Source of the DNA: Leidyana gryllorum EB-2025a
Lineage: Eukaryota; Protista; Apicomplexa
Reading direction: 5' to 3'
Assembly: GCA_048772705.1 (NCBI GenBank)
Contig: JBLWGC010000043.1
Coordinates: forward strand, 248,001-312,000
Length of the DNA: 64,000 nt
Shown here: in pieces, positions 1 through 51,578 of the stretch
How positions within the stretch are numbered: the first letter of the stretch is position 1
Layout: each line of letters starts with the position of its first letter
Made by a program: the position numbers and the translations under genes
Notes under the pieces: model-generated
What the model saw: the letters and a program-made list of their open reading frames with translations, nothing else
Databases searched by the model: none
What the model was told of the DNA's origin: nothing

Positions 1-3000
1 TACCCGATAATGATTGTAATCCTTCTGATTGGGAGAATGAACAGCAGACAAACTTTGCTGCTTCTAATTCGGGAGGTGACTCCGACTCGCTGTTGAGCGA
101 TTTCGGAGTAAGCGAGTCGCATCAGCACGTCCGCCACGCCCGATGGTTGATGTGGCTGATCTGCGTACTCCTGATATGCGATTTTGTTATTGCTCTCACT
201 GACTTGAGCGTTTCTACTCGTCTGGTTGACGGAAATGCGCATTATCATTTCGGGGTAGGTGACAAAGAGCCGCATTGCCCTCAGTGCACCCCATGTCTCC
301 CCTGCGTGAGAGCCCACTGCGCCGTTTTAACCGCCAAACCTTCGACTTTATGACTCATCGACTTTTCACAATTGCTGCAGCACGTACTTTTGACACACGT
401 TCACGATCACCGCTTGTTATCGAGAGCTTGTAGCCTAACCTACCAAGCAGCAGAGCTGGACGGCGCTTGCCCTGTGGAAAGATCCCTAGCACAGGCTGTA
501 AGTCCGAAGTGGTCGATTGGTTATAACGTAGATTTCAGCTTCGCAGTCGATTGGGCACGCTGCTCAGGCGGTCGTTGGAGCTGGGATCTTATACCGAAAA
601 GATTTCGGAGAAGCGGTGGGGTGTCTCGGGGTTGTGGCTGTCGCAAGTCACCCACTTGTGCTCGTTCCTGTTCCTGGATGACACTATGACTCGATGCAAG
701 CGCATGGTACGAGCTCCACAGCAGATCAGTATTCCTCAAGCTCAAACCATCACAATGGACTGGCGACAGTCGTGTCGAGTGTGGTTGGAATTGGTACGAT
801 GTCCACTGTGGTTGGGTGCAGAGCTGGAGGGACGGTTTCCGGCTTTTCGGCGTTTGGCCGACGCGCTGAGCTCTGCAACAACGCAACTTACATTGTTGAG
901 ATTAATTCGATTGTCTTTCTCTACCATCTCTGCCGCGTTTGGGCTTCCCGGATTGCCCAGCAAGGGAGCTCAACTTCTCCTCAAGTTCCGCCGGTCGATG
1001 CAGAGTGTTGGTGAGATATCGGCCCGCGACTTACTGACCGGGGATGTACTCGGATTGCAGTGCTGTTATGCACTGGCGCGCGCAGGCGTTCATTTGGCAT
1101 TGCGTGAGAAGAGTTTTAAGCTTAACACGTTGTTCGCGGAAGAGTCAGATGACTCTCTTCGTTTCCGATCACTGAGATGTGTACAGCGTTTAGCTCGCAT
1201 GGGAAAGCGGATTGCAGAGAGCGGTTTGGGATTCCAAACCTGTGATGTGGAAGCGCTGAGGAGCAGGCGAGGGAAGATTCCAAGAATGACACTGTACTTG
1301 TCCGACACTATTGATGAGTGGTTATTATACGACACCATCACGCGAGGAGCCGCTTTACCCACTTTGATGGACGCTACCAGCGCCAAGAAGACGGTGATGG
1401 CTCGGTCGCGACCTCGGTCCCGGGGGCTTCAATTGGACGACGAAGTGCTCGTGGCGGTGGCTCGGCAAGCTGATCGCCAAGCCTCGGAAATACCATTGAG
1501 TCAAGCGCTGCAGCATTGTCTGCAGCTGGAGTTGGAGTCTCTCATAGCCTCCATCCAAGAAGGTGCTTCGTATTATTCAGCCGTGTGGCGAGCACCGCGT
1601 GCCAATTGCACATATGTGAAACGTGATCGATATGTGATCAACACCGTTGGCTATTATCTCCTACCCTTGTGTGTAGTCCCTCACCAACACGGGTTTCCGC
1701 CCCGCAGCTGTTGGGCGAGTCACTTGTATGACCAAATAGGTCCAGCAGCGAATGAAATCGCTATGTCAAGCGGCGGCTTTTATCGTGGGCTTTCCACACT
1801 TTCAGTAAAATTAGATCCATCTGCGAATGATGAGACAGACCAAGATCGCCGGACCCTTAGCCGGAGTTCTGCTGACATGGATGCTGCCTCTCTCGACTCT
1901 CTTTCCTCGCTGGGCAACTCGCGAAGTGTGGCATCGCGAGCTTTCACTGAACTACTGCAACGATCCAAACGCCCCTCGACCTTGAGCGATGTGCGGGGAC
2001 CGCCACCAACCGAATCCTCAGACTCTGATGGGTCTCTCTCATCAGCGTCTGCCGACACTGCTGCTGCACCTCCCTGTCCCCACTTCAAGCGTCCGTTGCG
2101 GGGGGAGCGACCGTGGGATGCCCCGCGAGCTTGGACGTTCCGAAGAGCTTTCTTCTTCTGGAGCGCATTGGGCGCTAAGATGTCTCGTTTTGCGATTACT
2201 AATTTGTTTAGACAAGAGGGCGCAACATGCCATGGAGCCTGTCATCCAATGACCTCTTCAATCACCCCAACCCTCGGTCGTCTGTACGTTGAGAACAAGG
2301 TGACAACTCCGGCTGCCAGGTCGGTGATCGTATCCCACCTGTATGCCATGGTAGATGACCTGATCAAGACATCTGGAGTGGCCCGAGAAGTACCATCTCA
2401 GGTTGGAGATGCTCAATGGGAGCCCGTCTTGGACAAAAGAGGCTGGTAATCATCAATCGTATTGAGATATGGAATACTTGTATCGCGACTCCTGATGTCC
2501 TTCTTCTGCATATGCTGCCGCAATCTGCTTTGCGCTTCATTTTTCCGGTGTGTCGCAGGGATTGGGATGCTATCCTCAAACTGGCGAGTTGCGTTTTGGT
2601 AGTTGGGTTTGAAGACTTGCGTGATCGGCCATCCGTGTTTGCGATGGCAACTGCGCTCTTGGAGTGAGTCTCAGACGAAGATTGTTCCTTCTCCATTTCA
2701 AACTTTGTGTAGCTACTATTCAGTGAGTGGCAATCGATCTGCCACACTCGAAAGGAAGCCCTCTCGTTGTGACACTTGTGTGGCAGTAACAGAGGGCAAC
2801 TTTTTGTATCCCTCGCTTGTGTCGGTGTTCCTTATCCGTTTGGCGCTGGAGTCAGTTTCCAATCGTACCCATGCTGCCAAATCAGACAGCCCACTGGACC
2901 AGTTGTTGGAGGGCTTGTTGCGTCGATCTCGTAATGGAATGATGAAGTCCTTGACACTTCTCGGAGAAGTAGAGCCGTTTGACCATCGGCGTTTTGCTGG

Positions 3001-6000
3001 ATCACTGTGTATGATGGTGCACATGTTATCGATCCCTGATTCTCTATTCTCTCCCACAGTCCAGCATCTCCTGCTTCGGCTGGCGTCTCGCGTGGAAATG
3101 ATGAGAATCCCCGAGTTGCGACAGTTTGTAACCATCCTCTCCCCTGGAGCAGTGCCTGGCCATTTCGAGACCCTGCTTTCTTTACTGCAGACGGAGGACC
3201 CTTTGAAAGCTTATGCTATTCTCTCCACAGTGGGTACGTCCTTCACGTATCCCAGCAACCACGGAGGCTGGTGCTGTGAGAAAGCACTGAATACCTTCTT
3301 GATTGTGTTACTTGACCTCCGACATCGGTTCCTGTCGCAAAAGTATGAGAATCCGGGGGAGAAGGCCGTCATAAAAGCCGAATGGACCTCTCGGTTGTCA
3401 GAACGACCTGATTTGAACTTTTCTTTGGAGCTATTATTTGATACCGTAGATCGTGCACTATTCGTCCTTGGTTCAACGTTGAAAGTACTTCCCTGGGACA
3501 CCCTACTGGAGCATAGACGCACATCTGATGGAGCTGCTTCTTACAAGTCCAACTTCACTACTGAACGAGTCCCTTTCGCCGATCTGTGGGCCGGGAAAGG
3601 GAACTCGTTGTGTCCCCCGAGTCTGCGCTGGCTCGTTATGGCAAGAGCCATGGATGTCTACAGCCTGGATGAAGTCCGACACACCCTGTCGGAGTGGTTG
3701 ATGCAGCTGCCAGGTGACAAGTTACCAGCAGGATGCCCGGTTTCCCTGCGAGCCGAGACGTTCTCGTTATTGGTTCCGATGGCTTTGAATCACTCCGATC
3801 TATACGAAACGACAGGAATACAGTTTCAAAGCGGATTGGGCTTCGGCAACGCTTCGGTATTGAGCAAAGACAGGGCAATGGCCCGGGCAGTGGTGGTGGC
3901 GCCTCCCACTGCCGCACGATTGGGCTCACAGTCCCGATCTCGACCGGCTCGAGTGAATCTGAAGATCAAGGTACGCCATAAGGCGCTGGCGGGATTGCCG
4001 TCTCAATTGTGGAACATCAACGATATTAGTGACGTTCCAACTCACTCTCTTCCGTTCTATCTTCATGTCAAGATTGGCGCAGGATCGACTCATTTTGTTC
4101 CCCTGTTTCTCCGGCCTTTGGAAATTGGGCCGGATCTCCTCAATGATATGGCTGTCGCTCCCTGCCCCGTGGATCTGACAGCCTCCATTTTCCCATCTTC
4201 ACAACCGCCCGACATCACCCTCGTGCCAGACTGCTCCCCCGCGGCGCGGGCTAAGCTTTTTGCGGTCTCTACATCCTTATCACATTGGCTCGCATCGGAT
4301 TTTCGAAATGGCATTGCGATGACAAGCCCGATAGGCAATTGGGCCAGAGACCAATTAGTCCATCATATTGATAGTACCAGTGAATGGTGCGTAACGCTTA
4401 TCCTCCCCTATCGCTCCACTGGTCTAACCCAATCCTTAGGTACACTGCAGTCGGAGTCCTCCCCGAACCTCTGCGAGACGTTCGGTCATTTACTCCGACA
4501 ACGAAGATCAGATGTTGTTTGGCTATCCACACGCACAGTCAGTACACAATGAACGGTCACGACCCCATGGCCCCTTCCACTGTGCTCTATCTGAATAACT
4601 ATGGTGAACTGAGCAACTCTCCTTCTTGGCAAATAGACACCTCTGGGGTGAGGAGACGGCGCTTGGAAGTCCCCATTTTGTTGTGTGAATTCTCAGGAGC
4701 TCTGCAAGAAATGGAACGAAACGGGCCATCGATATGAGTCACGTTGCGAGATTCAGTTTCCAGACTGCCGTGAGTTTGACTTACCGACAATGTCTCCCCA
4801 CTTAACACCCAACAACAACAGAGTACTCTTATATATGTGTGGCTTCTACTGCGAACCCCGGGTCATTCGATCTCATTGCTATATCCTTCTTATATCGAGC
4901 TGTTTGGCTGGCAAATGAGGGCGAAGAGCAATGGTTGGCTCCTCGGATATTGAAGCTCAAGATGAAAAGGGCTCGTCTTCGAAGGAAATTCAGGTGAGTT
5001 TGAAAGTGGTGGTTTCCACCTGGTCTCACCTCACCTCACTAACTGCTCCCTCCCCTTGGACAGGCGGAGCACTGGCGATTTACAGGGTTGTGGGACTGCT
5101 GCCAGCCCTGACATGTATGTGCAGGTTTTGGATAGACTCAGCAAATATGGAGTGTCTTGTGACCGCCCTCAGCCTTGGTTGCCACCAACTCGCCGATTCT
5201 CTCCCAATTCTAACGGGAGCATTCTCGCGCATCTAACGAAATCTGCAGTTGGACGGGAATTCGTTATCAAAGATCTCCGATGCCTTGTGCGCGAAAAGAC
5301 CCACCTGCTGCAACATCCCGCAATTCTGCGGCGCCTATTCGGCGCGGCTGTTGAATTAGGCGGTGGCTGGGATCCCAAGTGTAAGCCCATACCAACTGCT
5401 TTCATACCATTGCACCTTCGCAGCTCAATGCCTGTCAATGCTGGGTCTGACAGTTGGGCCCTTGGAACGGGGTGCAGATCCAACTACCGAAGTAGCCCTC
5501 TCCTTTCTGCGGGACCCTCGAGACCATTTGGAGAATCACAACAATAGAGCGCCTTCTCCGTCCAAGACACTGTATAAGGCGTCTCCAGAGTTGTCAAACC
5601 CATTTGCCCATATCTCCGTGCCATCGAAATCTTCGCCAGAAGATCTGTTGACAAACTGGAGCGCAGACTCTGTCTGGCGCAAGTTCAAGATCCTGACCGA
5701 ATATCCGCGTACCGCTCTGGAACTCTTCCGTAAATGTATGGATCGAGGGCCGAGTCGACGAGAAGGAAATGACGTTCCCTCCCCCGACAAAGATTCAACG
5801 ACGACGGCGACAATGGAATGTGTTGATGAGATGGCTGTATTTAATCAGTGGGAAGGAAACATTGGACCGTGGCTTTCGCATGTCGCAAGTCAACAAATGG
5901 AGTTTTTGTGCAGCAAGCCGATTGTTCGGGAACTCCGTGTGGAGCTGACTGACTGCTGGGTTCAGAAGCTTGAGTGCGATGCATTCTCCTTCACCGAGGA

Positions 6001-6432
6001 GCATCTGGAGATCGTACGGCTGGTAAGCAGATCGATATGGCGGTAAAAAACACTAGTTGGCTTTAGGTGAGTGAACTGCGTAACAATGTTCTCAAGGGAA
6101 CACGTGGTTTGACTGAGAAACTGAAAGCCGCCACGTAAGTATGTTCTTATTTGGAATGTAGTGTGCAGTCAGAAGCGGAAAGGATCGACTATTTAGCTCC
6201 GTTGAGCTGGCGTGGCGTTGTGTGAAGCTCATTGAGCTCTACCACTACGACCAACAGACAACGTAAGGCTGCGGGTGACATCAGACCACAAGTTTGGCGG
6301 TGCAGGCGGACGATAGTGCAGCTATTAAAAGGCCATAAGTTTGCTCCGGGGACTGTCCGCTCTTCTTTCCATGACCGATGCGCACTTTGGGATACGTTGG
6401 AGCTAGGATGGACAGTTTACAACTCGACCTAG
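1..6432 (+). CDS. Giant uncharacterised multi-exon protein, family paralogue 1 (5'-partial; start lies before the window)
   Basis: ORF pieces at 93-353, 551-2449, 2603-4387, 4440-4700, 5056-6022 and 6067-6432 are joined by GT-AG introns (e.g. 4388-4439, 6023-6066). They carry, in order, the family motifs RHARWLMW, DWRQS..VWLELVRCP, GDVLGLQCCYALARAG, YVINTVGYY, LSPG..GHFE, LRAETFSL, HP.ILRRLFGAAVELGGGWD, FTEEHLEIVRL, SVELAWR and LWDTLELGW. TAG at 6430-6432. Confidence 0.85.
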
Positions 6433-6440: not shown

Positions 6441-9400
6441 ATGTCAGGCAGAGGGTGGCGGATAGAAAGCCTTGTACTGGGATGTCTGGCACGAGTGGAT
6501 CAAGTTGCCCAAACACCGCAGGACTCAAAAAGCCGAGCTTCCATACAGTCCCTCTGGCGGGCTCTCAGAGCACTGCTCCATGCGTGTGACGCTCCCGGGC
6601 TGGTGCTCTTCCATCTAACATATCGGAGTCAGATCGTGATTCCCGAGCATGTTCTTTTTAGAACCTCCCCATTGGCCCTCGTCTCCTGGCTCTACTTCAC
6701 CTTGCGAGTCAGCGCCGTCCCACTTATGGACGCTGAGCGACAAGTCATCTTACAGTGCCTAGCTAGAGTGTGGTCGCGCTCCTTTATGGGGGCTCTACGC
6801 AACGAGTTGCATACCTTAACACTGTCGTACAGCATGAACACTAGCTTGCAATGCCATTTTGACCAGATCACGAGACCGCTCTGGAGGGAGATTGAAGACG
6901 ATGCGGGCTCCCAAGCCCTTCCGAACCTGAAATGGGGAGATTCCTTAGCAACTGAGTCCCGATTGGAATGCTTGGGTAACACCTCCAGTATCTATTCTTT
7001 TTTGGCTGCGGTGCGAGGAATACTGGCGCTGTATCTAGCTCAGTTGAGCACCCTCATTGGGATCGCTCAAGGTGCTGCTGAGGCTCCAATCAGATCCTCA
7101 CATACCTCCTCCATTTTGGCCCGTGAAGCAAACCTGGTCGCCGCGACGTCCCTGAAAAGCGTCTTGAGACTCGCTCGACTGGTAGCATATCCTTTCATGG
7201 AGCTGACGATCATGGCCAATGGCACGGCAGTACGAATGGCAGATATTGATCATTCAGCGGACGAATTATCCTATGACGAGCTTGACTCCTATCACTCGTG
7301 TGCGCGAGAACCCTTATATCGATCCCAATTCATGCATAGCCGTAGAGCCTCCAACAATCTGCTCAGCTCCACTGAACATCTCGACATGTCGGAGGAAAGT
7401 ACCTCTTGTTCATTTGAGACTCAGTCGACAGACTCTGCGTCAATCCCAGATGAGCGACTTGAGCTCCTCAAGTTCTATCGCCACTATCGCCACGCTCATG
7501 TAACAATATGGGTACTTACCGCCATTTACACCGTAGATTTCGTTAGTATGCTTTCCTCCAACTGCGTGAGGAGAGGAGTCGGCTCGTTGGAACCCGTCGC
7601 TGAGATCGACTCTCCTCGTCACAATGGTGCTCACTCGGCAGGCAAACAGCTGGTGGTGAGTTCCGCCTCTGCCGGCATCAATACACAACAACCCCATAGG
7701 CTTACTGCAAGGACCTGATCTATGATGTTGGGCTCCTGCGACATTGTGTGGCACTACATCACCACACCGACTGTCTCACTTGGTCTTGTGCGACCGAACG
7801 GAATCTTTGTATGCGGGTAAGAACCGTGTCTCAGTGTTTGCGTGATCCGACCAAATATCATATGTGCTCCATTGTACTGCTTACCGCTTTTGTAGATTCG
7901 TCCTCGCTTGGGCGGCCTCATCAGGAACTGTCTTGAGCTTGGTTTCTGCCTAGACGCGCAAATTAGCCCAACTGTCACAGGCTTGTGGCGAAGTCAAATA
8001 CACGCACTCAGCGCTTTTCTATTTCTTGACGACTCTTTAACAACCCTACGACGCGTTCCGTTCAGGTCGATGGACGATGAACTCCGGAAGACTACTGACT
8101 GGCGGCAGTCTGCTGCTGTCTGGTTCGAATTGATCCGGACGCCTGTGTGGTTATCTCACGAACTGCGTGACCAAGTTCCAGGTGAGCTAGAGTGACATAG
8201 ATGGTTGGATTACAAAAGTGGGGCCCAGGACGAGTATCGATCTTGTCCTGATTCATTCCACTACACGTGACATGTCCCATTGATGCCGCAGGATTTCGAG
8301 AATTCGGCGAAGCTATCATGTGCAGTCGATCGGTGCTGACTTTACTGCGACTAGTACGGCTTCTCTTAAGCACCATAAGCGTTTCCTTCGGTTTGCTGGA
8401 GATGCCTTCGAATGTGACGAGTGCTTTTGATTTGCTACGCCGCCGCCTTTGCGGCATCGACAATCCTTTGCCGACTTATCTGACTCTAGGAGATGTCTTT
8501 GGTCTCCAATGTTGCTACGCTATGGCTCGAGCCAAAATACATATAGCCCTCAGAGGTACAGCACTTTTGATCTCGAACTTCGTTTCACTTACTCTGCGGA
8601 CATTTAGACAAGTCGCTGAACCTGGACCTGGCAGACGATGTCGTTTCCTGCCATAAGGGTTTGCGCGCGGTCCAACAGATCACGTGTCGCGTTCAGCGCG
8701 CCTTGCGTTTGAAGGTTGGTGGCAGAGCTTGGCGCTCACGTATCACGAATTTGCCCGAGAAATCCATAACAGGGCACGGAAGAAATGACTACTCTGTACC
8801 GCGTCTGTCGATATTTGTGGTTAACACGAAGGACGAATGGTTGTTGGCCAATCCGCGCAGTCAGTTGACAGCGGCAGTCGAGCCAAGTCTTTATCAGGTG
8901 GCCAGATACTGTCTTCGGCTTGAATTAGAGAGTGCGATCAGTTACATTCAAGAAGGGGCTACATATTATTCGAAGATATGGAAGGTGAGACACAAAATTC
9001 TACAGATGCTCCTCTATTGATGCCTGTCATCCCTCATAGGTACCGAGGCCTGGCTTCACATGTGTCAATGCTTCGATCGCTCAGCGATATCCAGTCAACA
9101 CTATTGGATACTATATGCTTCCGCTGTGCGACTCGAAGTGGGCCCCGGCGGGATTTGTCGCGGGTACGAACTCTCCAGTTTCAGGGGACTCGTCTCAGGT
9201 CTCAAGGACGTACTCGGTGGGAGCGTCCAGTGTGAGTTCGGCGCAGAAACCACACGGCTCCTGGTCGAACGACACTCGGGGAATGGATGTGTTGTCGAAC
9301 GATGTCGTGCTCTGCTCGAACTACTATCTTTATTGGAGCTCTCAGACTTACCACAATTATTCTCATCTTGCCTTCAACATTGGAGCGACACAAATCACGC

Positions 9401-12400
9401 CTTTGTTCGGACTCACCGATGACCCGCCTACTAAGAATCATTCTAATGAGACTGGGCGTAACCCGTCGAACGACTCCGAACCAGGGATTACGAAGAAACT
9501 TGAAGGTGATCGGAGTGCGTCTTATACCAGGTTGGATGGGAGCGGGAGCAGTTCTACAACCCGCGTGACTTTGACCACCAATATCTACAAGACTTTGTCT
9601 GCATCTCTGAATCGTAGCGACTCTTACCGAAACGATCTATCAAAGATTGTCGAAAGCATGTTTAACAGATCGGCTCCGGAGTGGTGGACCTCCGATCACG
9701 AGCCGTGGACCTCTGGGGGAAAGGTTTGGTCCATGAGGCGTACCTTCCAGTTTTGGAGCGCTCTGGTGGCTCGACTGAGTCGAGCAGCCATTCACTCGTT
9801 TGTGCAACGCGATGCAGTCCTGTGGAAAGGACGCTGTCATCCAATGCTCGCTGCGCTCCACCCTGAATTGGGTCGAGTGTACGTGGAAAGTCGTCTCTTG
9901 CCTGGTCGGGAGACACGAAGGGCACACGAACTGGCAATACAGGACGTTGTAGAGCAAATCTTGCTGCGCAGTGGGACCGTCAGGAAGGATCAAACGACCG
10001 GAAAGTGGTTTCCAGTAACGAAGGGTAAAAGTATGTGGGACTGGGAGAGTATTCTGAGTATCAGCACGATAGTGCTGTCATGTGGGTTGGATACGCTGCG
10101 AGACGCACAATGTCTTGATGCTTTTGCTGAGTCCATGTCTCACTATTACGGTGTTGACAGTGAGCACATAGACCGGTATCAGGCACGACGGCAATCTCGA
10201 GTGGTGCTAAGCTCATCATTGATCACAGAGATGAATTTCTGCTATCCAGCATTCGTCGCGGTCTTTCTGCTCCAAGTTGCTCTGGTCAACGAAGAAATGA
10301 GACAGCCTGGAGTTGAGGAGAGCAAATTTGAGCAGATAATGCATCGAACTTTGACTTTGCTGAAGGAATACGTGATAAAGTATCTGACAGAGATCTCGGA
10401 GGACGCTAGCATCACTTCTGAGATTATGTGTGCTAAGTTCCGAAGTTTGAGTTGCCTCCTCGGCCATTTGAATTCATCCGCTGCTGGCGAAGTACAGTGA
10501 GTGACGCAATGTGATTCCCTCTGCAAAGTGACACAGAGTCATAGGAATGCGAAAACGCAATCCATCTTGCTCAAGATTGCCAAATGCTCTGATAAGCTGG
10601 ACATGCTCACTCTTAAAACACTGCTTGATGCAATTAATCCTGGAGCAGATGCGAGTCACTATGATGTGCTTGAACAGGTGCGTCGATGAGCAGCAGCACT
10701 GATGGTCTCACTTCCTTCCGCCTCCTCAGTTACTCAGCACTCGCGACCCGCTACGTGCCTTTGTTGTACTGGTCAGTATAGCTAACGCATGTCGGGATCG
10801 GCATATAGAATGCGGTGGATGGGGAAATAATGTCACACTTCTGCATCCTCGATATCTGATGACTCTTATCCGGTTACAGGAGCGATTTGGCCATACACCA
10901 ACCGACGCTGCATCCCCTTCCTACAGGCTCGGCCGCGCTCTCCTGGCAGACATCTTGGACGCCCAGCTACACACACTTTCTTCGCGGACGAGTGCGAGTC
11001 GTTCTCACACAGTTTTTGAGTCTCACGGCTCCTGGACCAAATCGTTCCGCAAGAGTTGGAATGGGTGTCCCGGTCGAGGGAATTGGGCCTACCGCCTCCG
11101 ACTGCTTCGTGAGGCGGATTCCTTCGATCCTGAGGAGGTGATTGAAGTGCTGGAGGAGTGGATGGGGGGCTTCCCGGAGGGCGACCTTCCGTCCAATGCA
11201 CCAGTGGCTTTGCGGGGAGAGACCTTTACTCTTTTCGCTCCCCTCGCATGGCACTGGGCTGCCAGACGGACGAACCACAACGTTGAGTATCAGGTGAGCG
11301 CCGTGAAATGGGTCTCTCATCATTGTTCTCGCCGCGACATCCTCAGGTGGGATTCCTTCTTCCTGATGTGGAGTTGCTGAGGAGTGAGGCAAGATCAGTC
11401 AGAGCGTCCATCACATGCCGGTCTCGAGCGCTTCTGACGCGGAACAGTCGGTGTGCCCGCAAAGCGGAGCGGATCTCTCGTACACCTGTGACCATTCGCG
11501 TCCGCAGAAGCCGACTGCGGGGCATTGCTCAGCGGATGTGGAAAATCACCGACTTTGTGGACGTGCATCCCTACAACATCCCCCTGTGTCTCCATCTGCG
11601 CGTGGGGAAGGAGCCGGAACAAGTCATTCCTTTGACAGTGCGACCATTCGCGGTCCCGCCTGATTCGCTTGTAGATCTGTATTGGGACATTCCGCAGCAT
11701 CAGTAAGTTGTTGGGCGTTTGGCTTCCAATCTCGAAGTAGTCTGACTGCGGAGCACTTATTCTGGCCGTCAGTGTTCGACTGTGCTATTGACGTGACCGG
11801 AAATGACGTGAAGCAACCTCAAAGATTCATCACACTTAGTTATATCAGTCAGTGGTTGGACCGACGAGTTTTGCCAGTTATCAACCCTGACGAAGCCGCA
11901 TTAGATTGGCACGATGAGTATCACAATCGGCAGAGTTCATCATTGTGGTAAGTCCGTCCGACTTTACCAAGATGCACTCACTCTTCAGGCTCTCTTGTGT
12001 GGGTGTGCCTTCCAAGCCACTCAAGAAGTTGCAGGATTACCCGGACGAGACTATCGTCCGCTGCTGTTTGTCCATTCACACATTGCAGCAGTACTCCCAC
12101 GAGGGGTACTCTTCCGGCGCTGCTTCCGCATACTTATACATTAATGAGTATGGACAAATGACTGAGCGCGCTGCTTGGCAACGGACTTCCATTGCGGTGA
12201 GCACGGCCAGGGATGATGGCTGCTGAAAACGTTGAGACAGACACTGAAGAATCTGTACAGAGAGACGCCAAAGTCTGGGAACGGCTACAAGCTTTTGCGC
12301 CACCCACAATCTCGTAAGCTGGCCTGGGCGTCTTATTCGTTGAAATCCTTCAGAATATACTTACATCCTGGGGGAGGCGAGCTCGGCGAATGAGAGTTCC

Positions 12401-13844
12401 ATTATTGGTATCTCTTTCATCTTCCGGGCCTACGCATTCCAGAGCGATGCGGAAATTCGATGTGTAGCTAGCGAGATATCTCATCTGAAGATGGCGCGAC
12501 GGCGGGCGAGACGAGCTCGCCGATCTCGACCGCAAGTCAGAGATGCTGTCAGCGTGCCCACAAACTTGGCAGCCTTACTGGATCACATACATTGTGAGGG
12601 ACTCTGGATGAGACAATCAGCGGAGGTGTGGACTCCACTGACGCGAACTTACAGTCCTCGGGCCCCCGGCAGCCTTCTACTTCCGATAGCCGAGTCCATC
12701 GTGGGACGTCGTTGGCTGACCTCGGAGCTCGACAAGTTGACTACTCCGCAAAATCACATTCTCCTCAAGCACCCCGGGGTGTCCAGCCGCTTACTGGGAA
12801 TGGCATTAGAGCTCAAAGGCTATTGGAATCCCTCAGGTGAGTCTCGGTGACTATTGGGACGTTGTGACACTTGGAACCCTCAGAACGCCGAGTTACCATC
12901 TTCGGAAGACATTTCGGCCCTCTGGCTCCCACAGTGGACCCCGGAGGTCAAATTGCGTTGCAATTCTTCGGAGACGTGAGTGTTCGAAGGGAGTGTGTGG
13001 TCAGGTGTGCATCGTTTTGCTTTTATAGGCCTCCTCGGTGGTGCCGGATTACACTGACTTTATAACCATCGGCGCGTTCGATCCACCTACTCTTGAAAAT
13101 CGATATACCAACGAGCTGAGCGAACGGTGAGATCTATTGCTTCTGAGAGGGCGCCTTGAGATCAATGTTTGCAGGCGGAGGTTGTTGGTGGAGCACCCGT
13201 CGTCTTTTCTGGACCTGTGTATGTTCACCGAAAAAGCCGACAGCTCGTCGGAGTCTAATGGCGAGCATCGCGAGGATCGAGGGTCACGGGGTATCAAGGG
13301 GGGCGGTGCAGGCCAGATAGGAGGGTCATTCCAGTTGGGAAGCAAACGGCGGCGTCCGCCTCGGATTATGTGTCATAACAGGCGGGGGCTGGCGAGGAAG
13401 ATGAGTTGTCCGTCGCTTTCGTTCACTGAGGACCACTTGCGGGTGGTGAAACTGGTAGGTGGTAGTCGAGATCTGTGTGATCTTTACGGTGGAGGCAGAT
13501 CGCCACAATGCGTAACGCGGTTCTCTCCAAACTGCGGAAACTCTCAGAGCTGCTGCATAGCTGGGTGGAGCGGTGGCCCGCCCTGTTCATGTCTGTTGAG
13601 TTGGGATGGCGAGTAACGAAATTGTTAGAACTGCGGGAGCATGATCATGAGGTTGGGTGAGTATTTGTTGGTGTTGTTGTTGTTGTCAATCAGCTTCTGA
13701 AGCCGTCTGTGGCATGCCATCACTCTGGACATTGACTGGGCGTGTGCGAGCCTTTGCACTTCCTACCAGGAGCGCTGTACATTATATGACACTCTGGAGT
13801 GGGGTTGGACACTCCTAGAGGAGAGCAACGATCATAAAAGATAA
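6441..13844 (+). CDS. Giant uncharacterised multi-exon protein, family paralogue 2
   Basis: ATG at 6441 (MSGRGWRIESLVLGCL; upstream in-frame ATGs at 6378 and 6408 overlap paralogue 1). Same motif order: LARVWS, DWRQSAAVWFELIRTP, GLQCCYAMARA, YPVNTIGYYMLPLCD, LRGETFTL, HPGVSSRLLGMALEL, SVELGWR, LYDTLEWGW. TAA at 13842-13844. Many short introns (e.g. 8985-9039). Confidence 0.85.
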
Positions 13845-21182: not shown

Positions 21183-21199
21183 AACTAGTTGCCCAGAAA

Positions 21200-21295
21200 G
21201 GAGAGAGAGGGAGATACGCACAGACAGACAGACAGACAGTTCATTGACTAGACGCCCATATTGATCGATATACAAGGTGGAGAGAGAGAGAGATC
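21200..21295. repeat. (GA)n and (GACA)n microsatellites between convergent 3' ends
   Basis: gagagagagggaga, cagacagacagacagacag and gagagagagaga runs are visible. Confidence 0.8.
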
Positions 21296-21396
21296 GAGAT
21301 TGTCGTAGCCCCCTCCCTGATCTCTCAAATCATTCACTCATGCCTGTTTTCTCTCTGCGCTCTTTGCTCAATGGTCGATCACTCTCATCAATCAGT

Positions 21397-29983: not shown

Positions 29984-30130
29984 TTATGAAATTCGTGGTA
30001 AACCACATTGTAGTGACTGCGAATAGCGATAAAACACATAGATAATACAAACGATATGGCGATCAACTGACAATGCAGATACGATGAGGGACGATCCGGT
30101 CCAATGTGAATTGTCCTCAAATAATCGCTT

Positions 30131-30895: not shown

Positions 30896-31041
30896 GAACG
30901 TGTGGTGTTGTGTCTCGTTGTGCTCGTTGTGCTCGATCTTTTTTTTTGTACGCTTTTTGGGCTCACAACGGCGGGGTAGGACCCATATCGAGTAAGTGGA
31001 GTACGCTTTCCGGCGCATAGCCATTGCAGGGCACCAACAAA

Positions 31042-31657: not shown

Positions 31658-31704
31658 ACGTTTATGGACCTCGTTAACTTGTGCTCTCCGCCTCGAACAG
31701 CTCG

Positions 31705-33648: not shown

Positions 33649-33668
33649 CGACTGCACACACGTGCGAA

Positions 33669-34397: not shown

Positions 34398-34440
34398 ATT
34401 CCTGGCTGAAATCTTTTTACACTCGTGCAGGGAGACGTAG

Positions 34441-40400: not shown

Positions 40401-43400
40401 CCAACTGGCGATGGACTTGCGGGGACCCATAAGCTGCAATGTTGCTCTCGTCCCGCTGCAGCTCTGCGGATGGATACACATCAGATGACGAGCACAATAG
40501 GGGATCATTGCTGCTGGGCAGTTGCGTTGCGGAAGCTTCAAGCTCGCGGTAACTCGGCTGCCGAGGGGTATATTGGCTGGATCTGCTCTCATCGAAAGGC
40601 TCAATATAGTCACTGACCCTCGAAGAAACGTAATCTCTTTGTGACACAGACTTATCCAAGACTGGGTCATCCTGTATTGTCTCTACGGCTGCTTCTGGCA
40701 CTGGAGGCATTGGTACAAACGGCTGGTATATGTCTTTTGCGTGTGCGAGACATCCTTCAAACAGTATGGCCGGCACACTCATGTGTGCCTGTGAGCTCTG
40801 TTGCATAACCGCTTCCTGAATCCGCTTGGCTTTGTCGAGCTGTAGCGGGGGGATCGGAACCTTCGGTTTAGACTGACGATGCAGCTGGTTGCATCTAATG
40901 TTCGCCACGCCCTCGCTGGAAGCGCACGAAGAAGAACTGACACACGTTGGTGTAGGAAGCACGGCATTCTGGGCTGACGGCATCTCGATGGAGGCAACAC
41001 ACTCGCGGGTGTGATGAACTGTAGCTTTAGTGAATCGCCGCTCTGCAGGCTTCTGTGAGATCAACGGGATATTGGAGGGTTGATTTTGGACCGGACGGGT
41101 ATTTTCGTCCGGCGGAGTTTCGCGTATTGGACTGCCCAACTGGTCAGGTTCCTCTGTTGGCCGTTGGAAATCCCTGACCCTGTGCGGGCCGGTGTAGCCG
41201 GTTGGCGCGCCTTGGCCCTGCTGGACGGCCAGTTTGGGCCGAACAAAGAGAGCGTCAACTCCGCCGGTTGACTGATCGCGATTTGGATCATTCGCCCGTG
41301 TTGAGCTCTGGTTCCCCCGAGGGGTACTGATTGGATGGCACAGAGTTGGATAGCAGGAGGCATAGAATAGATTTTCGACCTTGCGGACCAGCGGCGGTGT
41401 CTCGGTCGCACGGAGACAAGCGAGGGTGTCTCTCGGACCTGCGGATTTGGACACAGGGGAGGGTTGGGGACGAGGAGGACTGGCAGATGAGGCTGCGAGC
41501 TCATTCGGGGTTTCACCGCCCTGGGAGCTTAGCCAGTTGAAGCATGAGCCGAGGAAAGAGGTTGGGAATGCATCGTCAGGGGGTGCAAACAGGAAACTAA
41601 GCATCTCTCTGTTCTCACCTTCCAGATCAGATTGTACAAATTCGCACCTTCTTGTATGCGTTGAAGTGTGTATTCACATTCCAAACGGCATACATACATG
41701 ATCAACTCAAACTTGTTCATCCGGCTTTGCCAACGATCCTGACCCTCCGGAGGAGCGGATCTTAACAGCCAATCGTCAGCATCATAGACCAAATAGGTTC
41801 TGAGGTTGGGCACAGCGCTCTGCATTTTACGGGCGAGGGCCAAACTCGACAATTCCGGGAGACTTCCATTCATTCGCAAGCGCCAATTCCGCAATCCCAT
41901 CGTCATATTCTGTATTCTGTAACCGATGGAAGTAATCTTGTGAATCGCTCGCAACCCTGGGCCGATAAAAGGATCGTCCTGACGATGCTCCGCTGGGAGT
42001 TTGGACGAGCGATCTGGGTGGGGCGGGAAGAAAGAGGTCAGTGGAGTGGTTTTGAACGGTGTTTTGTACCTCGTAAAGCCGTCGCGACACCAGCCATGGC
42101 CAGAGTGTGACAGCACTGCAGTCCCAGCACATCGCCTATCATCAAACCGTCAGGGCGGCAGCCGTGCTGGCCTTGCAGACGGCGTCGAGTTCGCTCGAAT
42201 GCATCCCCCATGCCGTGATGGGGCACCACTGGCATTCCGAAAGCTCGATTCACTGTACTGAGAGTGAGACGAATTAGGCGGAGGAACGTTAGAGGGGAAT
42301 TGCATTTGGCGAAGGCTTGTGCGAGTTGTCGTGAAGTCACGAGACTATTTTCGAGTTCAAATGCCAGCCAGGAAGGCGAACCAACCAACTGGAGCCAAAC
42401 CTCCGACGAGTACCGCCAGTCCATTAGCGCCTCCCCGCTTTCCGTGCCTCGAGCTGGCAGGCGTCGAGCTCGAGTCAATGTATCTTCTGCAAAAAGGAAC
42501 GCGCACAATGATCGGATTTGCCCCTTCCACGCTCCCGTTAGGCTTCGAGACACTTGTCTATCAGCGTGAAGTCCTAATTCCATACATCGTCTAATCATTA
42601 TACCCAATCTGGGCCTGATCTTCGCAACAAGAAGGTGTAGCGCGACCGGGCGATCGACGGTAAAGAGCACTCACTATGTCTGCCAGGGCACTCTCAGCGG
42701 CACATAAGGGCGAGAGGCAGCCCATGTGAGCAAATAGGTTTGCGCATCGCGACAGCAAGCGACTGTCGAAGACTTGTGTTCTAATGAGACGCTTTAAGAG
42801 ACTTGGTGTCATACTATTTGAGGCGTCTCACCTTGAATTCTCCCAGCAAGAATGGATGTTTCAATCTCGTGGGTCGAATACTGCTTCCTTGCACGATGGC
42901 AAGATCGCCTACTATTTCAACGAAATCGATAACAGAGAGCACACAAATGGCCCACAGGACAAGCAACCCATGTCTCTGGCAATAGGCAGTACAATGCGCG
43001 GCTTGGAGGACCTGTGATCGCGGTTGATAGCCCCCTTGCAATGTTGGTGGTGCTGAACGTGTTATGCACTTGTAGAAGTGGCCAGCGTGACGGTGGAGAT
43101 TTTGTACAGCCACAGAGATAGATATGGAGTCAGGCTGTCCTGACTCCAGTGTAAAGGATAAATTCGCAGCCGAACCCCTTCTAGACGCGCGTGCGCTGTG
43201 GGCCACAGGAGGGGCAACGGCACTCACTGGATTCTCCCCCTCATCTGGCCGTCGTAGGCCCATATTGGCGTGACGGTAGAATCGAGTCATGGAGAATTTC
43301 AAGATGTGACGAGTGCAACAGAGATATGCGTAGAGCCCGGACAGAACCGCAGGGGGCAGTGATCCCTTGTGACTCAGGAGGGCACTCAACGCCCGCTCAC

Positions 43401-43847
43401 TTTCGTAAAACAAGAGAAATCGGTAATTATAGGACATAGTGAGGGTGTGGATGGCGGCGCACACCCCTCCACCGAAGCCTGTCGACCATACGCGAGCCAG
43501 ACAATGAAGTGCTATCGCTCGGTTGAGGTCGTCGGCGCGGAACATGGCCGCGCGGATCACGCATGTCACCCAGCTCAGGATGCCGAGGTGTGTGGTTCTG
43601 TAGGAGACATTGAATGGGATGACCTTCTGAATGCAGTGTCCATAACGGGCAGTGAAGACGAGCAGACGGTCAGCCGTTGTCTGCCAGAAACTGTGAGATT
43701 CCTTCGGATGCAGCAGCGACAACTCACCGCCTGCAAAAGCAACCGCAATTGCACCAAACAGGGTCGAAGTTCCGTCTCAGTGGCAGCGGAGTACAATAAT
43801 CGGTCCAATTTGATCAGGCAGTTGCATAGTATGGCCTCTGCTACCAT
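34441..43847 (-). CDS. Giant uncharacterised multi-exon protein, family paralogue 4 (contains the 2.17-kb intron)
   Basis: ATG at 43847 (MVAEAILCNCLIKLD). Motifs LARVWS, QRHGLLVLW, DWRYSSEVWLQLVGSP, GDVLGLQCCHTLAMAG, YPVNTIGFYFTPLCD, LSPGQACGHFE, LQAECFSL, HSGVVNRLLGLAVELRGGFD, ELWWRA, LLWDTLELGW. Stop at 34441. Confidence 0.83.
39598..41604 (-). CDS. Nested intron-less 668-aa low-complexity (S/P/Q/E-rich) ORF inside the paralogue-4 intron
   Basis: Uninterrupted ATG (41604) to TGA (39598). No family motifs. Ends with a basic patch RRRKKGWWPKRVWNKFR and NSR[QHED] repeats. Confidence 0.7.
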   Translation of the reverse strand: MLSFLFAPPDDAFPTSFLGSCFNWLSSQGGETPNELAASSASPPRPQPSPVSKSAGPRDTLACLRATETPPLVRKVENLFYASCYPTLCHPISTPRGNQSSTRANDPNRDQSTGGVDALFVRPKLAVQQGQGAPTGYTGPHRVRDFQRPTEEPDQLGSPIRETPPDENTRPVQNQPSNIPLISQKPAERRFTKATVHHTRECVASIEMPSAQNAVLPTPTCVSSSSCASSEGVANIRCNQLHRQSKPKVPIPPLQLDKAKRIQEAVMQQSSQAHMSVPAILFEGCLAHAKDIYQPFVPMPPVPEAAVETIQDDPVLDKSVSQRDYVSSRVSDYIEPFDESRSSQYTPRQPSYRELEASATQLPSSNDPLLCSSSDVYPSAELQRDESNIAAYGSPQVHRQLEVYAAAVPDYGYHARCSTPPLLAVEQFEDDTALGRVRREVWRKYQLEQQQPKRHYAVDNFYRYSPHDTEEEMIPIVGVPCYWESDPSSLVSRAGWSPAQEEFEEGNVETHVQLHSNYDHRYDPECGGRIDMGAPLAHLRPNVSISSGPSAQSEVFHSAESVEHSGFPSAAASQMVSRYASAQESLPGTMEQTLTPQKTSESEMRRRKKGWWPKRVWNKFRQNSRHNSRQNSRENSRDNSRQNSRENSRDNSRESSFAPIPVVPSTPQ
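39648..39743. repeat. Eight 12-bp tandem units with a 36-bp higher-order period, encoding (NSR[Q/H/E/D])x8 on -
   Basis: Units gagagttgtcgc, gggagttctcgc, gagagttttggc, gggagttgtcgc, gggagttctcgc, gagagttttggc, gggagttgtggc, gagagttttggc. Confidence 0.92.
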
Positions 43848-43854: not shown

Positions 43855-46800
43855 CTAAGGGCACAAACCCAGCCAGAGGTGCCACCCCAACTCCAGAGTG
43901 TCGTACAGCAAAGAGGAGGCCGCTGTTTCAAACAGCTGTGGGCGCCCACAGACTGCACCAATTTGCGTGAGTTTCATGCAGAAGTTATCAGACGAGCTAT
44001 GGTACATCTCCCAGATCTTCCATGCCCTCCACCACAGCTCTACCGATCTATACAACGCAGGCTTTTCTTCCTTCAAGCTCAGCAGAGTGGAGAAGACAGC
44101 ATTTTGTTGGGAAGGCACTGCCGACTTGAGAATCTATCACACCCAAATGACAGACATTGGACAACAACACGGCTTGCCTACCAAAGCTAGGAGCTTATGA
44201 TGCTGGGGCCCGTACGCCAGCTCCGGGCAGGCGAGAGCTTGCGGTTTCAACGCCTCAACTTGCTCGTGGTACGCTACCACGGGGTCCCTCGTCCAGTCAC
44301 TGTACGTAGCCCACACATGGCCTGGCCTTCGTTGAACCTGCTCGAATCCACCTTCTCTCAGAGACACAGCGTGCCAATACCGGGACCCCTGGTAGGAGGC
44401 AAATCGATACCTCGCCCCCGCCGCCTTCTCGCCGTGGTGCTCTCCTGAGCTCTCCCGACACGAGTGGTATCCCGCCTCTAAGGGGATCTCGGCAACCTGA
44501 ACAAAGCTATTTCGAAACAGTTCTAAAGCGGTGTTGGGCCACTCAGATAATGTTCTGCAACATGACATATTACCAGGATGGCAGACACCCTTCGCCTCTG
44601 TACCTCATTTTATATAGGATACTGACGATCCGAAAAGAACAAGCAGTCGGAACTCTCCCCATCCGCGCTTGACAATCTCGGTACAGATCACCTTGTTGCC
44701 GCCGATTCAACCGGTTGATACGACTCTGTGTGTGCAATCAATGTGTCTCGTCCACACGACTCAAACGTCACCTTACATCTCCCAAGTATAAAAGCGCCAG
44801 ATGAGATGCGTCATCAGCGCACTCCCCAACAAAGGAGAAGACGCGTCCCAGCAGAGACAAACTCCGGGCTGTTCGACCACCAACAGATGAACCACAAATC
44901 AGATGCTCACTTCTCCACTCCCAAAAGCCTTTGAGTTCCACCGCGGCCCCGAGCAACCGCGACAACACACCCGGGTGACTCAGTAAATGCTGTTGGGTGG
45001 TAGCCAGTATGTCCAGATCTTCCATCAAGATTGTCCGACCTATGGAGAAGATTGATTGTTTGTTTCAACAAAATCAATCCGATCAACAGATCGTTCTCAC
45101 CTATGGAGGTACCGGACAGCAGACTCAGGATGGAATTGTGTTCGTGAGGCCGAAATCGATTGGCGGGTGGATCCCAAGCATTAACCGGACGGAAGCATCC
45201 CATGCCTTTCTTGTAGGAAGTCTCGATTCCTTGGTGAAGCCACGAGGGCACCGTCACAGGGAGTTCTCTACCTCTGCAAAACAGGACGGTGAACTGACAG
45301 CCACCACCGCGTATCGGACTCACAAGGTTCTCATATGGAGGGCCTTCTTGATCCGTTTGGAAAGCCACTGCCATTCGTCCATACTCTCAACAAAGTATTG
45401 GCGGATCATCAGGGAGACGCCCAACAAGTTGCAGTCAGCGTAGTCTGGAGGCAGTGACGAACATATCCAGTTGTATTCTGCCTCAGAACAAATCAATTGG
45501 ACATTACTCTCAATCCAAGGAGACACATTGGCTTACGAGCTTTCTTCTCAGGTACCACTCGGTACCCCGAAGTGTACTGCCGCTGATTCACGTAGTTCTT
45601 CCTGATGGACTGCTTGTCAATGCGATACACTCAATTCCTCGCATAAAGGAAGATGTACTTACTCCAACCGTAGTGGTGTGCCATGTGGGTTGTGGACATG
45701 GCAACCCGAGGGGACACACATAGGTAACGCCGAAAGGGAGCTGGGGGTCGTAACCGTGAGCAGTATATCGACTATACAATTGTATAGCCAGACAAACTTG
45801 GACTGGAGTTGCTGGGTCCATCGACTCCATGTTTCGGAGCGCCTGGGGCAGAATAGCCACTGCAGTGTACCTGAGAAGAGCCAGCGGATGGTGCCAGGCT
45901 CCCACTCCCTACCAGCTCGTACGAGTATCTCCAAATCGGTGGCTCAGATCATAAGTCCAGTGGCCAGCTCCGTCATCTGGGCTCCCCACCACCTGTTGTT
46001 GGCTCTGTAAAAATGCAGCCATATAGGAGATATTGATATATCGTGGAGGGGGATCGTGGTGGAAGTGCAGCAACTCAATCTCGGGATTAGAGACGAACGG
46101 CCAGAACCACTGCTCGCAACTGAACCTGCGGCGGAGAGAAAAGCGGCATATATCTCGGCGAACAATTCAAAGCGTGCGTTCCCCACCCGTGTAACTGCAG
46201 ACGCATTGCGTAATCTATGACGACTTCCGGGGCTAGCGGAGCCTGACGGATCAGTAAAGGGATCTGCATCAATTTGCCGGTCCCTATGCGAAGGTGTAAA
46301 AAGTATGGACAGCTATTGGGGCCGACATCAATGCAGTCCTCAGCGGTCCACAACTTGGGCGGTAAACCTTTGAAACGGCCCTTTCTGATTCTCAATCTGC
46401 AAAAGCAAACAAAGCGACTGATGTCAAAAGGAATACAATCATTGCTCACCGAATCTGGGCTCCGGGGGTCCTTCTCCGGCCCAGTCCTCTCTTCGTCAGA
46501 GCCGTTGCCCCAGACAGGATTGAACGAGTACTCGCAACAGACTCTCTGGTTCCCGGCCTGATTACAGCCTCCACAACTGCACGATTCCCATCAAAGACGT
46601 TGATGTCAGGAGGGAGCAGTAACAGTTGGTAAGGGACTTTGTAGCGGCCGTCCCGATTATAAGAATCGATGCTCACACGCGAGAAGAGCGAAAAGGTCTC
46701 GGCTCTGAGTGTGATGGGCGCCTCAGACGGGAGGCAATAGTGCGGGAACCCCTCAAGCCATCTACGAATGGTCTGGATGACGACTTTGGCCGGAAAGGCC

Positions 46801-49800
46801 TCCACTTTGCTGAGAAGAGCGCGGCGGAGAGACCAGGGCATAATGGTATTGTCGTTCCACAACTGGTCAAATGTGTAAACCACATCAGGATTGGCGTCGT
46901 CCGTCAATATGGAGGCAAACGGAATGGTTTTACACCAGGTGGACAACTTGTGGATATGGTTGTCAAGAGCGCTGTTCAGCAAGGCAAAGCACACAGCGAG
47001 ACGTGGATCTTCTCTGATCTCATCCTTCCATGAGGGGGCAAGTCGCCGTCTCAGCATCCGGCGACGCAGCTTCAGCATCATATCGAGATATCGTTCCCGG
47101 CTCGAGTTCGATTCTGTCCAGCCTCCTCGATCGGTTCGTGTCTCTAAATACGCTGTCCCTATGGAACACAGGACAGCATACGCCCGTAAAGGGTCGGAGG
47201 TCCGCATTAATTCACATAGAATCTCAGTATGCTGCGGGTCCACTCCCGGTGAGAGTGATCCCGCAATCCGCATGACTACCTGGACTGGTAACCTGTCCAC
47301 CAGTTTGGCCACCTCGGTGAGTGAGTCGAGCACAGCGCTGACACTGAAGCACAATCAGAGACGTATAGTGTGGACGTTGACCGTCGACTTACTGTATGAG
47401 ACGTTCGGGACACGGGTGCTCTGTATTGATGAAGTGGATCAACAAACACTGGACGCCTTCGAATTTATTGAGAGGGAATTCTGGTGAAGCAGCGCACAGC
47501 CGGAGGGTCTTCTCAAGTCCCTTGGCGGTCCTATCGACGATGCTCCTCACCAAGACGTCCAAAGGTGGGGGATCCTTATCCCGTGGAATCGTGTCGTGCA
47601 CTACAGCCAGTCTCATCAGGAAGCAGGAAGTTAGTCCAACGTAAGGATACAGATGTCCATCCACAGAATGCGGCTCCTCCGACTGCGAGTTGCCTCGGAT
47701 TTTCTCGAAATTGCCGAGTTCTTGTAGTCCAAACCCATAGAAACTGGGATCATTGGTAGGGTTGCAGAGTCACTTCAACTTACTGTTTGAGCCCCACCAA
47801 GAATGCGTACAGAGACTCGGAATCGCGCAACTGTTCACTCGCTATGCTCACAATTGATGTCATCAGCTGAAGGATCGAAGGCCATTTCCTGTCAGAAACA
47901 TTTCGAGAAGGCTCAGCAATTAGCATCTTTCCCACCATTTCGTACAGTTATCAATGCAGGGTGTCCATCCCGTTCCGTCGGGTTTCCGGCGAGCGACGCC
48001 GGACGCTTCCACAGCGTCGTCAACAACTCGTTGCAGAGTGTAGATCAAGTCGTTGTTGGACGCGTCGCCAGCCCAGTTGACCTGCGCCTCGAGGTAAGAT
48101 CTGCCAGCTCGAGTGTCCAGACGCGCTATCAGCGCCATATATGCCGGGCAACACTTTGCTCGTTCGCGAATGAACATATGCTGGAAGGCTTTTCTCGAGA
48201 CGCGCGCACCGACTGCAGAGTACAATAAGTGTGACTTCTTGAGGGAAAAGGGCCTCCAGATTGGCACCGACTCCAGCAGCCGACGTAACGAAGCTTTTCG
48301 GCAGCTCCGAGAGCTTCTTCTGCGCATATTCAGAAGTATTGAGCATCCCGAACGACAGCTCGAAGCGGTACTGGCCGAAGCTGCCAGATCGGAATTGAGG
48401 AGCGATTCGAGCTCATCGGGAGCTTCTGAGTGATGGTCCGTTCCTTTCGCGGAACTTTCAATACTTTCTCGTGACGTGATGTGTACACTGACTCGACGCA
48501 CTGGGAGCTTTTTGTCTGAGAGGCCTCCATCTTGGCCGCCTGCAGTGTGCATCGTCGATGGTGGTACTAATGACACTTTCTCGCTTTGTTGCTCTCTCTC
48601 ACCAGTTTCGCTCATCCACGTCGTCAGTTCGACAGAGGAGTGACACTTTAGGATGGAGGAGGTGGTGGCCGCGGAAGTCTCTAGTGAATTGGGCTGAAAG
48701 GGGGTGGCCAGCACTTTTATGGCCATCGGCGACCAGTCGCCCCATGTGAGGGCATTCCACAATGTGTAGTGCTCCTTGGCGCTTTCCAGATCAGTGGACA
48801 TTCCATTGGCGAGGGGGTAGAGAGCCGTTTGGGCTTTGGACATATTACTCGAAGGGGCGCTCGAGCTCACCACCCCAACGTGTCCCAGAAACCTAAAGAG
48901 GCTCTGATCCGGCGTTACACTCGACTTGCAGCCGGCAGTTTGATTCTCTCCGATCTTCAGAGCGTGGATTCGACTACTACGTTGAATGATTGGACCGAAT
49001 TGCGAGGGCAGCCATCGGGCATCGCAGATGGGGATGAGATAGAAGCCAATCGTGTTGGGGGGATACTGAGGCATTCGTTTCGTCTGGATGGTCCGGGTGC
49101 GCGGCACCTGAAAGAATGATATTCTGTCTGTCTCCCAGACGACGCGCACGTCGCACACTCACCTTCCATACTGAGGAGTAGAAACTTGAACCTTCTTGAA
49201 TTTGAGAGATGGCATACTCGGCCTCTAATGCTGTGCAGTAGTATGCTACATCCTCTAAACTGAGCTGATAACCGGACAAGTCCAGTAAGGATGTATCTGC
49301 TGGTGGTACGGCCAGCAGCCATTCCTCCAGATCTCTGACCACAAAGCGGGTGAAAGCTGGTAGTCTTCCTTCGTCCATATTGCCGAACAATGAGCTGTTC
49401 AATGCCGCGAGCTCGGGAGGCTCTTCAGCCTGGCGTGCCGCCCAAATCTTGTCACCCACACTGCTCTGATACAGTTTGAGGCCTCGATGACAGAGCTTCT
49501 GGATTGATCGAAGCATCGAGTATCCGTGATTTTCACCCGCGAAGGGGAGCCTCAAAGTCTGTGACTTGTCTATAGATTGGGAGAAGAGGTGAGAATGGTA
49601 TCTGAAACTCGAAGCCACTCACCTCGCAAAGCCTGATGTACGCCGGCAGAGGCGAGGGCGAAGCAACTCTGCAAGCCCAAGATGTCCCCCATGATAAGCT
49701 GTCGCGGTTCGACAGGTCTGACACCTTGCATCAGTCTTCTCAATCGAGAGAACACTCGATGACCGCTCCCAGGGAACCCCAGTGTTCCAAAGCAGGTGCT

Positions 49801-51578
49801 TATGATGCTCAAAACCAATCGAATGAGTCGCAATAAAGTGAGCGGATGCTGCGCACCCGTTATGGCGTCTGCTAACCGGCGGAATCCTGCGTCGTTACAG
49901 TGTTGTAGGGAGAGCAGTTCCTCATGAAAGCTTCACACTACTCACCCACAATTCGGTCATGTAGTTCGGCCGACAGCCACACAGGGGAGCGGGAAAGTTC
50001 TAGCCATACCATACTGTGCATTCGCCAATCTCGGACGGCCGAGCGGAGGTTTGTGCTGGTATCCTGACGATTGCCATCAGCGACACGGCTGCTCCGCGTC
50101 AAAGTAACATCGGCGAACATAAAGGCGCTCAGAGCTTGAACTTGTGATCGCCACGCCTCAGAAATAGCAGAGCGATTCGTCAACTCATTCTCTACCGAGA
50201 ACGCCATTTCAAGAGCCCGACGTAATGCACAGCCCAATCGGGGTCTGATCTGGCAGTGATCGTTCCGTGTCCTTTGTACAGTTACCAGCTCACCTCGTCC
50301 TCGAGCGCTTTTTCGCAAATGCAAGATAGATTGAGGTTTGATATGTGCCCATACTGTCGAGCCGTGGTGGAGATTAAGCGCAGTTCGCATACGAGAGCTT
50401 TCGTGAATGCCTGCAGACTGAGTGATTCAATACAGGAATGACACAAACAGCGTTTCGGCGAAGAACGGGGCGCGCGCCGATTGTGGCGAGCGACTTCAGA
50501 TACTTAGCGTCAGCACTTACCCGCAGCTCATTTCCCACCTGGGCTGTGTTAACGTTTTCGGAACCAATTTCTTGTCCCCACAGCAAATGCATCAAACCAA
50601 TTTGCTCCACAAAGCCGGCAAAGGTTGTTTGAGTGCAGGTCCAAAGTACAAGCGGTGCGTGACGTTGATGGGCAAAGCCACATGAGGATCTCCTCTTGGG
50701 GGTAACATAGTCACAGTGCTTTACGAGGAATTGATTGGTGACTCGGGCCAAGATGTCCAGCGGTTGGAACATTGCCCCAACGAAATGGTTGTCAGGCTGC
50801 CCACCTCGCTCAACTCCCTCCAACGAACTCCTTTGAGCCTGGAGGATAGCGGGTTCCACTTGTTTCTCCAGCGCTGCTCGCTTTCTTGATATGGCAAGGC
50901 CATATCCCGCATCAATGACGGAAGGAGTGATTATCGCGTCACAAGGCGACAGATCGTGCAGTCGGCGCAAGTAGAATGCGAGGACTCCACGCAGACACGC
51001 CAAGTGTGCGTAACAAATATTCGCAGTGGTCGAATCCAGTATCTCATTCGAATGCTGTAGTCGCAGGATAATTTGTGCGAAATCTTGTGCTATGAACAGT
51101 CGGATATTGTATAAGACGGATAAGGTGAAGATCGTCGAGCCCAGCCGGCCGATAAATGGACCCGACCAGACTCGAGCCAAACATTGCATTCCCAGCTGCC
51201 GCACACGCACATGGCCGCTTACAAGGGGTGCGCGGAGAAGGTACAGCAGCCATGATATGGTCTCATACGAGGTCCCGTGATAGGCCACTTGCGGCGGGAC
51301 AGCGATCAGGGAGCGGAAACGATTCCCCAGCAACAACAAATCCTCAGCCGTGGTCTGTCCAACTTGACAGGCTCGCTATGCATGACGACACCTACCGCTT
51401 GTAGACTGGTGCGCAAAGCTCCCATGTACCGTTCATAAGAATGAAATTCATCTGCAACGGTCAGAAAATCTTCAGCAGCAGCTCCCTCCTGAGGTATTCC
51501 CTCCGTGTCAATGAGCTCCTGCAGCCTCGACAAACTTGAAAGGACCAGATGCGCCCCTGTGAGGCTGCTGCACCTCAT
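43855..51578 (-). CDS. Giant uncharacterised multi-exon protein, family paralogue 5
   Basis: ATG at 51578 (MRCSSLTGAHLVLSSL). Motifs QCLARVWSG, HQRHAPLVLW, DWRMHSMVWLELSRSP, GDILGLQSCFALASAG, YPPNTIGFYLIPICD, LSPGVD, LRAETFSL, HPGVLSRLLGAAVELKGFW, SVELWWRAWK, LLYDTLELGW. TAG at 43855-43857. Confidence 0.85.

Follow-up and report, generated by a model that had tools for sequence, protein, structure and literature searches.

Introduction

The inner-ring scaffold nucleoporins Nup205/Nup192 and Nup188 (Pfam models PF11894 and PF18378) are soluble proteins of ~1900-2200 amino acids (aa), which adopt an ARM/HEAT-like solenoid fold. The same size, solubility and predicted fold characterize a protein family from the gregarine-type gut parasite Leidyana gryllorum EB-2025a, which differs from Nup205/192/188 in having no sequence match to them, a strand-containing region of ~250 aa towards the end of the chain and six tandem paralogues (G0-G5). 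Five of these are located in the window, i.e., the whole stretch of 64,000 nucleotides analysed here (C43:248001-312000 of a 15.5-Mb, 237-contig genome), and the sixth copy, G0, lies directly upstream. The ARM/HEAT proteins CRM1 and other karyopherins, MMS19, CAND1, RICTOR and MEI1 compare with the family at 5-14% identity and a root-mean-square deviation of 4-6 Å, with no whole-protein correspondence.

The molecular components of gregarine cells are almost entirely uncatalogued, and this old, conserved ~245-kDa family without a described member is a concrete candidate for some of the missing pieces, be they unrecognised apicomplexan nuclear-pore inner-ring scaffolds or components of a gregarine-specific cortex. 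We describe the family as so far found only in gregarine-type apicomplexans, of a known structural class and probably acting as a scaffold. In our general reading, its members are α-solenoid proteins that serve as non-catalytic scaffolds in a large assembly, with roles divided among the paralogues (probability roughly 0.7). Weighing against its importance, orphan families are to be expected in a thinly sampled group, and the role put forward here is a predicted one.

Six Old Paralogues under Purifying Selection

Gene models were obtained by a local splice-aware parse and manual refinement. Single exons or natural open reading frames (ORFs) were used for database searches and folds, and the joined spliced models only for local alignment and counting. 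In these models, each of the six copies yields an open frame of 2146-2252 aa in 14-20 exons, and the introns are of the GT-AG type and 36-113 nt long, except for one of 2173 nt in G4. Since the parser can force open frames, intron position served as an independent control. At the identical aligned codon and phase, 82 of the 98 introns recur in another copy (85 within one column), compared to 3.2 shared introns on average and 14 at most upon random placement (2000 trials). An exon of 117 nt is present in 6/6 copies, and the introns on either side of it are also found in a single-copy outgroup gene (L014, see below).

The sequence-only reading of the window had described collinear motif blocks in five large, apparently intact genes of an old lineage-specific expansion. 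These blocks are real and occur in collinear order in the five window genes, each literal pattern being confined to some copies (LARVWS to three, with variants in the others), and all-against-all BLASTP of stop-to-stop segments returned collinear full-length matches with E values down to 1e-47. Pairwise protein identity between the copies amounts to 26-32%. Four-fold degenerate sites are 24-31% identical, which corresponds to the random level, and second codon positions are 48-54% identical; synonymous divergence (dS) is saturated, and nonsynonymous divergence (dN) of ~0.9-1.0 is well below dS. Based on the saturated synonymous sites, the low protein identity and the shared introns, the six copies are old duplicates that arose at the DNA level and are under purifying selection, and thus the age and intactness claimed for the five genes extend to all six open frames. 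The retained introns rule out an origin by retroposition. Splicing and expression of the six copies are predicted from the gene models.

On the plus strand, G0 (C43:239426-246929, i.e., window coordinates -8574..-1071; 2197 aa), G1 (1..6432; 14 exons, 2252 aa), G2 (6441..13844; 19 exons, 2146 aa) and G3 (13861..21182; 16 exons, 2202 aa) follow each other head-to-tail at a spacing of 37, 8 and 16 bp. G1 extends 1033 bases upstream of the window and terminates with a stop codon at 6430-6432. On the minus strand, G5 (43855..51578; 20 exons, 2226 aa) and then G4 (34441..43847; 18 exons, 2154 aa provided that the 2173-nt intron is removed) are likewise arranged head-to-tail, 7 bp apart. The genes span 7.3-7.7 kb, except for G4 with 9.4 kb, which corrects the reported range of about 7-9 kb, and the reported count of five is to be raised to a family total of six. 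Three independent searches of the 15.5-Mb genome, using different parts of the protein as queries, placed all copies at this one locus and found none beyond these six. The retention of six 7-kb copies in a genome of this size, with gaps of 7-43 bp, argues for strong selection on each of them. The same-strand gaps of 8, 16, 7 and 43 bp (6432-6441, 13844-13861, 43847-43855 and 34397-34441, the last one between G4 and an adenylate-kinase-family gene) imply that untranslated regions or promoters overlap adjacent coding ends, or that the genes are co-transcribed.

Predicted Fold and Known Relatives

The copies share 108 invariant positions, mostly L, W, R, G and P, among which no catalytic-type motif is apparent. 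Visual inspection revealed no signal peptide, and the copies have no transmembrane segment in common. Scans of Pfam, NCBIfam and PDB sequences with exons, the outgroup ORF and an alignment profile yielded nothing above cut-off, in agreement with the initial impression that no domain can be assigned. AlphaFold models (predicted local distance difference test score ~60) are indeed mostly helical and suggest an ARM/HEAT-like α-solenoid without a specific match; two of them, covering about half of the chain, feature well-predicted helical cores of stacked antiparallel hairpins, and no internal repeat was detected between the two modelled halves. Structural match lists contain mostly ARM/HEAT proteins, while neither Foldseek against PDB nor a structure search of the Atlas gave a significant match (none at E<0.001). 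The models thus point to a soluble, largely helical protein of ~2200 aa, which belongs to the ARM/HEAT-like α-solenoid structural class. A membrane channel, e.g., of the IP3/ryanodine receptor type, was considered and rejected, given that there is no conserved transmembrane segment and no hydrophobic segment near the C-terminus; matches of the RIH type are generic.

The best-conserved block of 190 aa (in G3 at 15121..15672, plus strand), a predicted ARM/HEAT-like helical stack, was used to build a profile that was scored against 1.84 billion protein representatives. This exhaustive search retrieved four relatives and no match outside gregarines: P0002 (EukProt EP01054 Gregarina sp. Poly1 P005017), P0003 (EukProt EP01053 Blabericola migrator P006829) and two proteins from the Logan contigs L014 and L015, both of gregarine-type DNA. 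In line with the novelty proposed for the family, neither the profile search nor Foldseek, with models of about half of the chain, gave a confident match to a characterised family. P0002 and P0003 are true homologues of the six copies (E 1e-37; 23-28% identical across 600-1040 columns), but partial transcriptome proteins without a name or described function, which branch outside the six-copy expansion. The trophozoite transcriptomes of Gregarina sp. Poly1 and Blabericola migrator have been sequenced (PMC8051059), and the EukProt entries appear to derive from that study. Word-index homologue searches returned the query only or nothing, but failed to recover even P0002, an established homologue, and these blanks weigh little; scans of JGI metagenomes revealed no relatives.

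Contig L014 (SRR31860986, 45% GC) carries a single copy of ~1930 aa, which is 24-26% identical to the six. It resides between an abhydrolase gene and genes for an adenylate kinase, a B-box protein and an S4-family protein, and despite ~25% identity in the giant protein, the gene order matches the array locus over 11 kb. Contig L015 (ERR10900107) harbours in tandem the tail of a G2 orthologue (52%) and a G3 orthologue (56%, includes P0001). In a phylogenetic tree L014, P0002 and P0003 are separated from the six copies, which radiate as a star-like group (97/99, with a long-branch warning), and a mixture-model tree recovers the same split (82/94).

Possible Roles of the Family

Within the scaffold reading, stacked ARM/HEAT-like helical hairpins with a conserved Trp/Leu core would provide an extended binding surface, from which Ser-rich disordered loops might protrude as variable inserts at fixed places, and a mixed α/β domain would occupy the third quarter of the chain. 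The protein most likely functions within a large intracellular assembly, either structurally or as an adaptor, and the six copies probably became non-redundant by adopting different partners, positions or life stages.

Rather than a family of its own, the proteins might correspond to a different giant ARM/HEAT protein of wide distribution (RICTOR-, MEI1/PRD1-, karyopherin- or URB1-like), as orthologues that diverged beyond recognition. The structural matches to ARM/HEAT proteins fall into this class, but no family stands out above the rest, none reaches the Foldseek threshold and the exhaustive profile search remained confined to gregarines, such that we consider this origin rather unlikely.

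The best named candidate assembly is the nuclear-pore inner ring, a location that would compete with the cytoplasmic one suggested in the sequence-only reading. That the copies represent a highly diverged, six-fold expanded Nup205/Nup192 or Nup188 is compatible with the size and fold class of these ~190-230-kDa proteins (1929-2252 aa, helical models and no hydrophobic segment shared across the copies). In the ESM Atlas a Nup192/205 cluster ranks top for P0004 (0.90) as well as for P0004 residues 860-1260 (0.91), and Nup188_C is also listed. Moreover, Plasmodium nucleoporins are known to escape sequence recognition (PMC9601220). Yet, the Nup192/Nup188 Pfam models and the sequences of solved Nup192/188/205 structures did not match exons, outgroup ORF or alignment profile, a test with limited sensitivity in divergent parasites, and the Atlas lead is weak, as Pfam, PDB and fold position lend it no support. 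Searches of the L. gryllorum genome with PF11894 and PF18378 gave no match either, but lacked a positive control and are therefore uninformative. Since no sequence match was obtained, and the structural matches, which are weak and lie out of position, decide neither for nor against a collinear whole-chain fold (N-terminal, middle/tower and tail domains), we do not class the family as Nup205/188, an identity that we regard as doubtful. As to other nucleoporins, a recognisable gp210 (NUP210 Ig domains) is encoded near a large gene with a 1252-codon frame (C194:123115-128800, L021; L020:785-7611, minus strand). The large gene beside gp210 on C194 is unrelated to the family, and a Nup205/188 identity of that gene finds no support in Pfam or PDB.

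A more specific proposal would view the family as a giant solenoid invented by gregarines. Each of its six old paralogues would be a dedicated subunit that the others cannot replace, all within a single large assembly, be it the epicytic-fold cortex or a remodelled inner ring of the nuclear pore, and one copy would also carry an independent gene on the same strand in a conserved intron. We put this forward as a speculative combination. The single copy at the outgroup locus, as far as covered by the L014 contig, implies that the hetero-oligomer suggested in the sequence-only reading would not be ancestral, provided that the outgroup is truly single-copy.

Less likely still is a cortical function, in which the paralogues would build a hetero-oligomeric lattice in the 12-nm filaments of the epicytic folds, the rippled dense structures or the internal lamina. 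The known range of the family is restricted to gregarines, relatives stem from trophozoite transcriptomes, and the candidate structures and filaments have themselves been called enigmatic (PMC3849649). However, the 12-nm filaments were described as intermediate filament-like, a description that fits coiled coils better than solenoids, and the outgroup locus manages with one copy.

An enzyme or a nucleotide/lipid-binding machine, with the active part in the mixed α/β region or the C-terminal 300 residues, appears very unlikely. The invariant positions include a few D, H, C, E and R residues, and neither region is covered by a confident model, but P-loop, kinase, protease and ligase motifs are missing and no scanned exon matched Pfam; consequently, the enzymatic option raised in the sequence-only reading found no support.

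The G4 Intron and Its Orphan ORF

The GT-AG intron of 2173 nt in G4 (39446..41618, minus strand) is delimited by a strong donor (41618) and an acceptor that is in frame (39446), and its position and phase are common to G2, G3, G5 and the L015 orthologue. It contains an orphan ORF of 668 codons on the same strand (39598..41604), which is open in a single frame and starts with an ATG 14 nt past the donor. The Ser/Pro-rich product, whose tail comprises a basic segment with Trp as well as short repeats, has no Pfam match and no paralogue. The ORF could represent either a separate gene nested in the intron or an alternative last exon of G4, joined via an in-frame acceptor at 41521. That some copies are pseudogenes, notably G4 disrupted by this insert, is hardly credible: a 98-nt intron (acceptor 41521) could join the insert in frame to the upstream exon, whereupon G4 would stop at 39598, but removal of the 2173-nt intron restores the family length and a shared intron position, the half of G4 past the insert has an open frame and matches the remaining copies in its degree of conservation, and the codon pattern speaks against pseudogenes.

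History of the Array and Neighbouring Genes

Compared to its single-copy outgroup, the locus bears traces of duplication, of introns lost and gained, of an inversion and of a nested gene. The abhydrolase gene is head-to-head with G0, the adenylate-kinase-family gene, which was the downstream neighbour in the ancestral arrangement, lies 43 bp past G4, and the downstream block is reversed relative to L014. Because L014 has one copy amid matching neighbours and the block is reversed here, the simplest history is a tandem expansion in the order G0-G1-G2-G3-G5-G4, followed by an inversion of ~30 kb with a breakpoint between G3 and G5. In this history, one copy between the α/β-hydrolase gene and the adenylate-kinase/B-box/S4 block was duplicated at the DNA level, introns included, into a head-to-tail array, and all six copies were retained under purifying selection to synonymous saturation. 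The later inversion cut the array into two opposed halves, flipping G4 and G5 and placing unrelated genes between G3 and G4. Orthologues of both G2 and G3 in L015 indicate that the expansion is older than the split from that species. GA and ACAG microsatellites are located at 21200-21300 directly after the G3 stop codon, near the inferred breakpoint.

The unrelated genes between G3 and G4 (21183..34440) code for CRAL-TRIO, SDE2, an S4-domain ribosomal protein, B-box and adenylate kinase proteins. Genes near the array include an ATPase-linked double guanylyl cyclase, a threonyl-tRNA synthetase, CRAL-TRIO and B-box; like the homologues of the giant protein, these neighbours indicate a gregarine-type apicomplexan as the source of the DNA. 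The guanylyl cyclase gene (52400-61500, plus strand) combines a HAD-type ATPase module with two subsequent guanylyl cyclase domains, as in the alveolate flippase-guanylyl cyclase type, and a related ATPase region is present on the minus strand ~22 kb upstream of the window.
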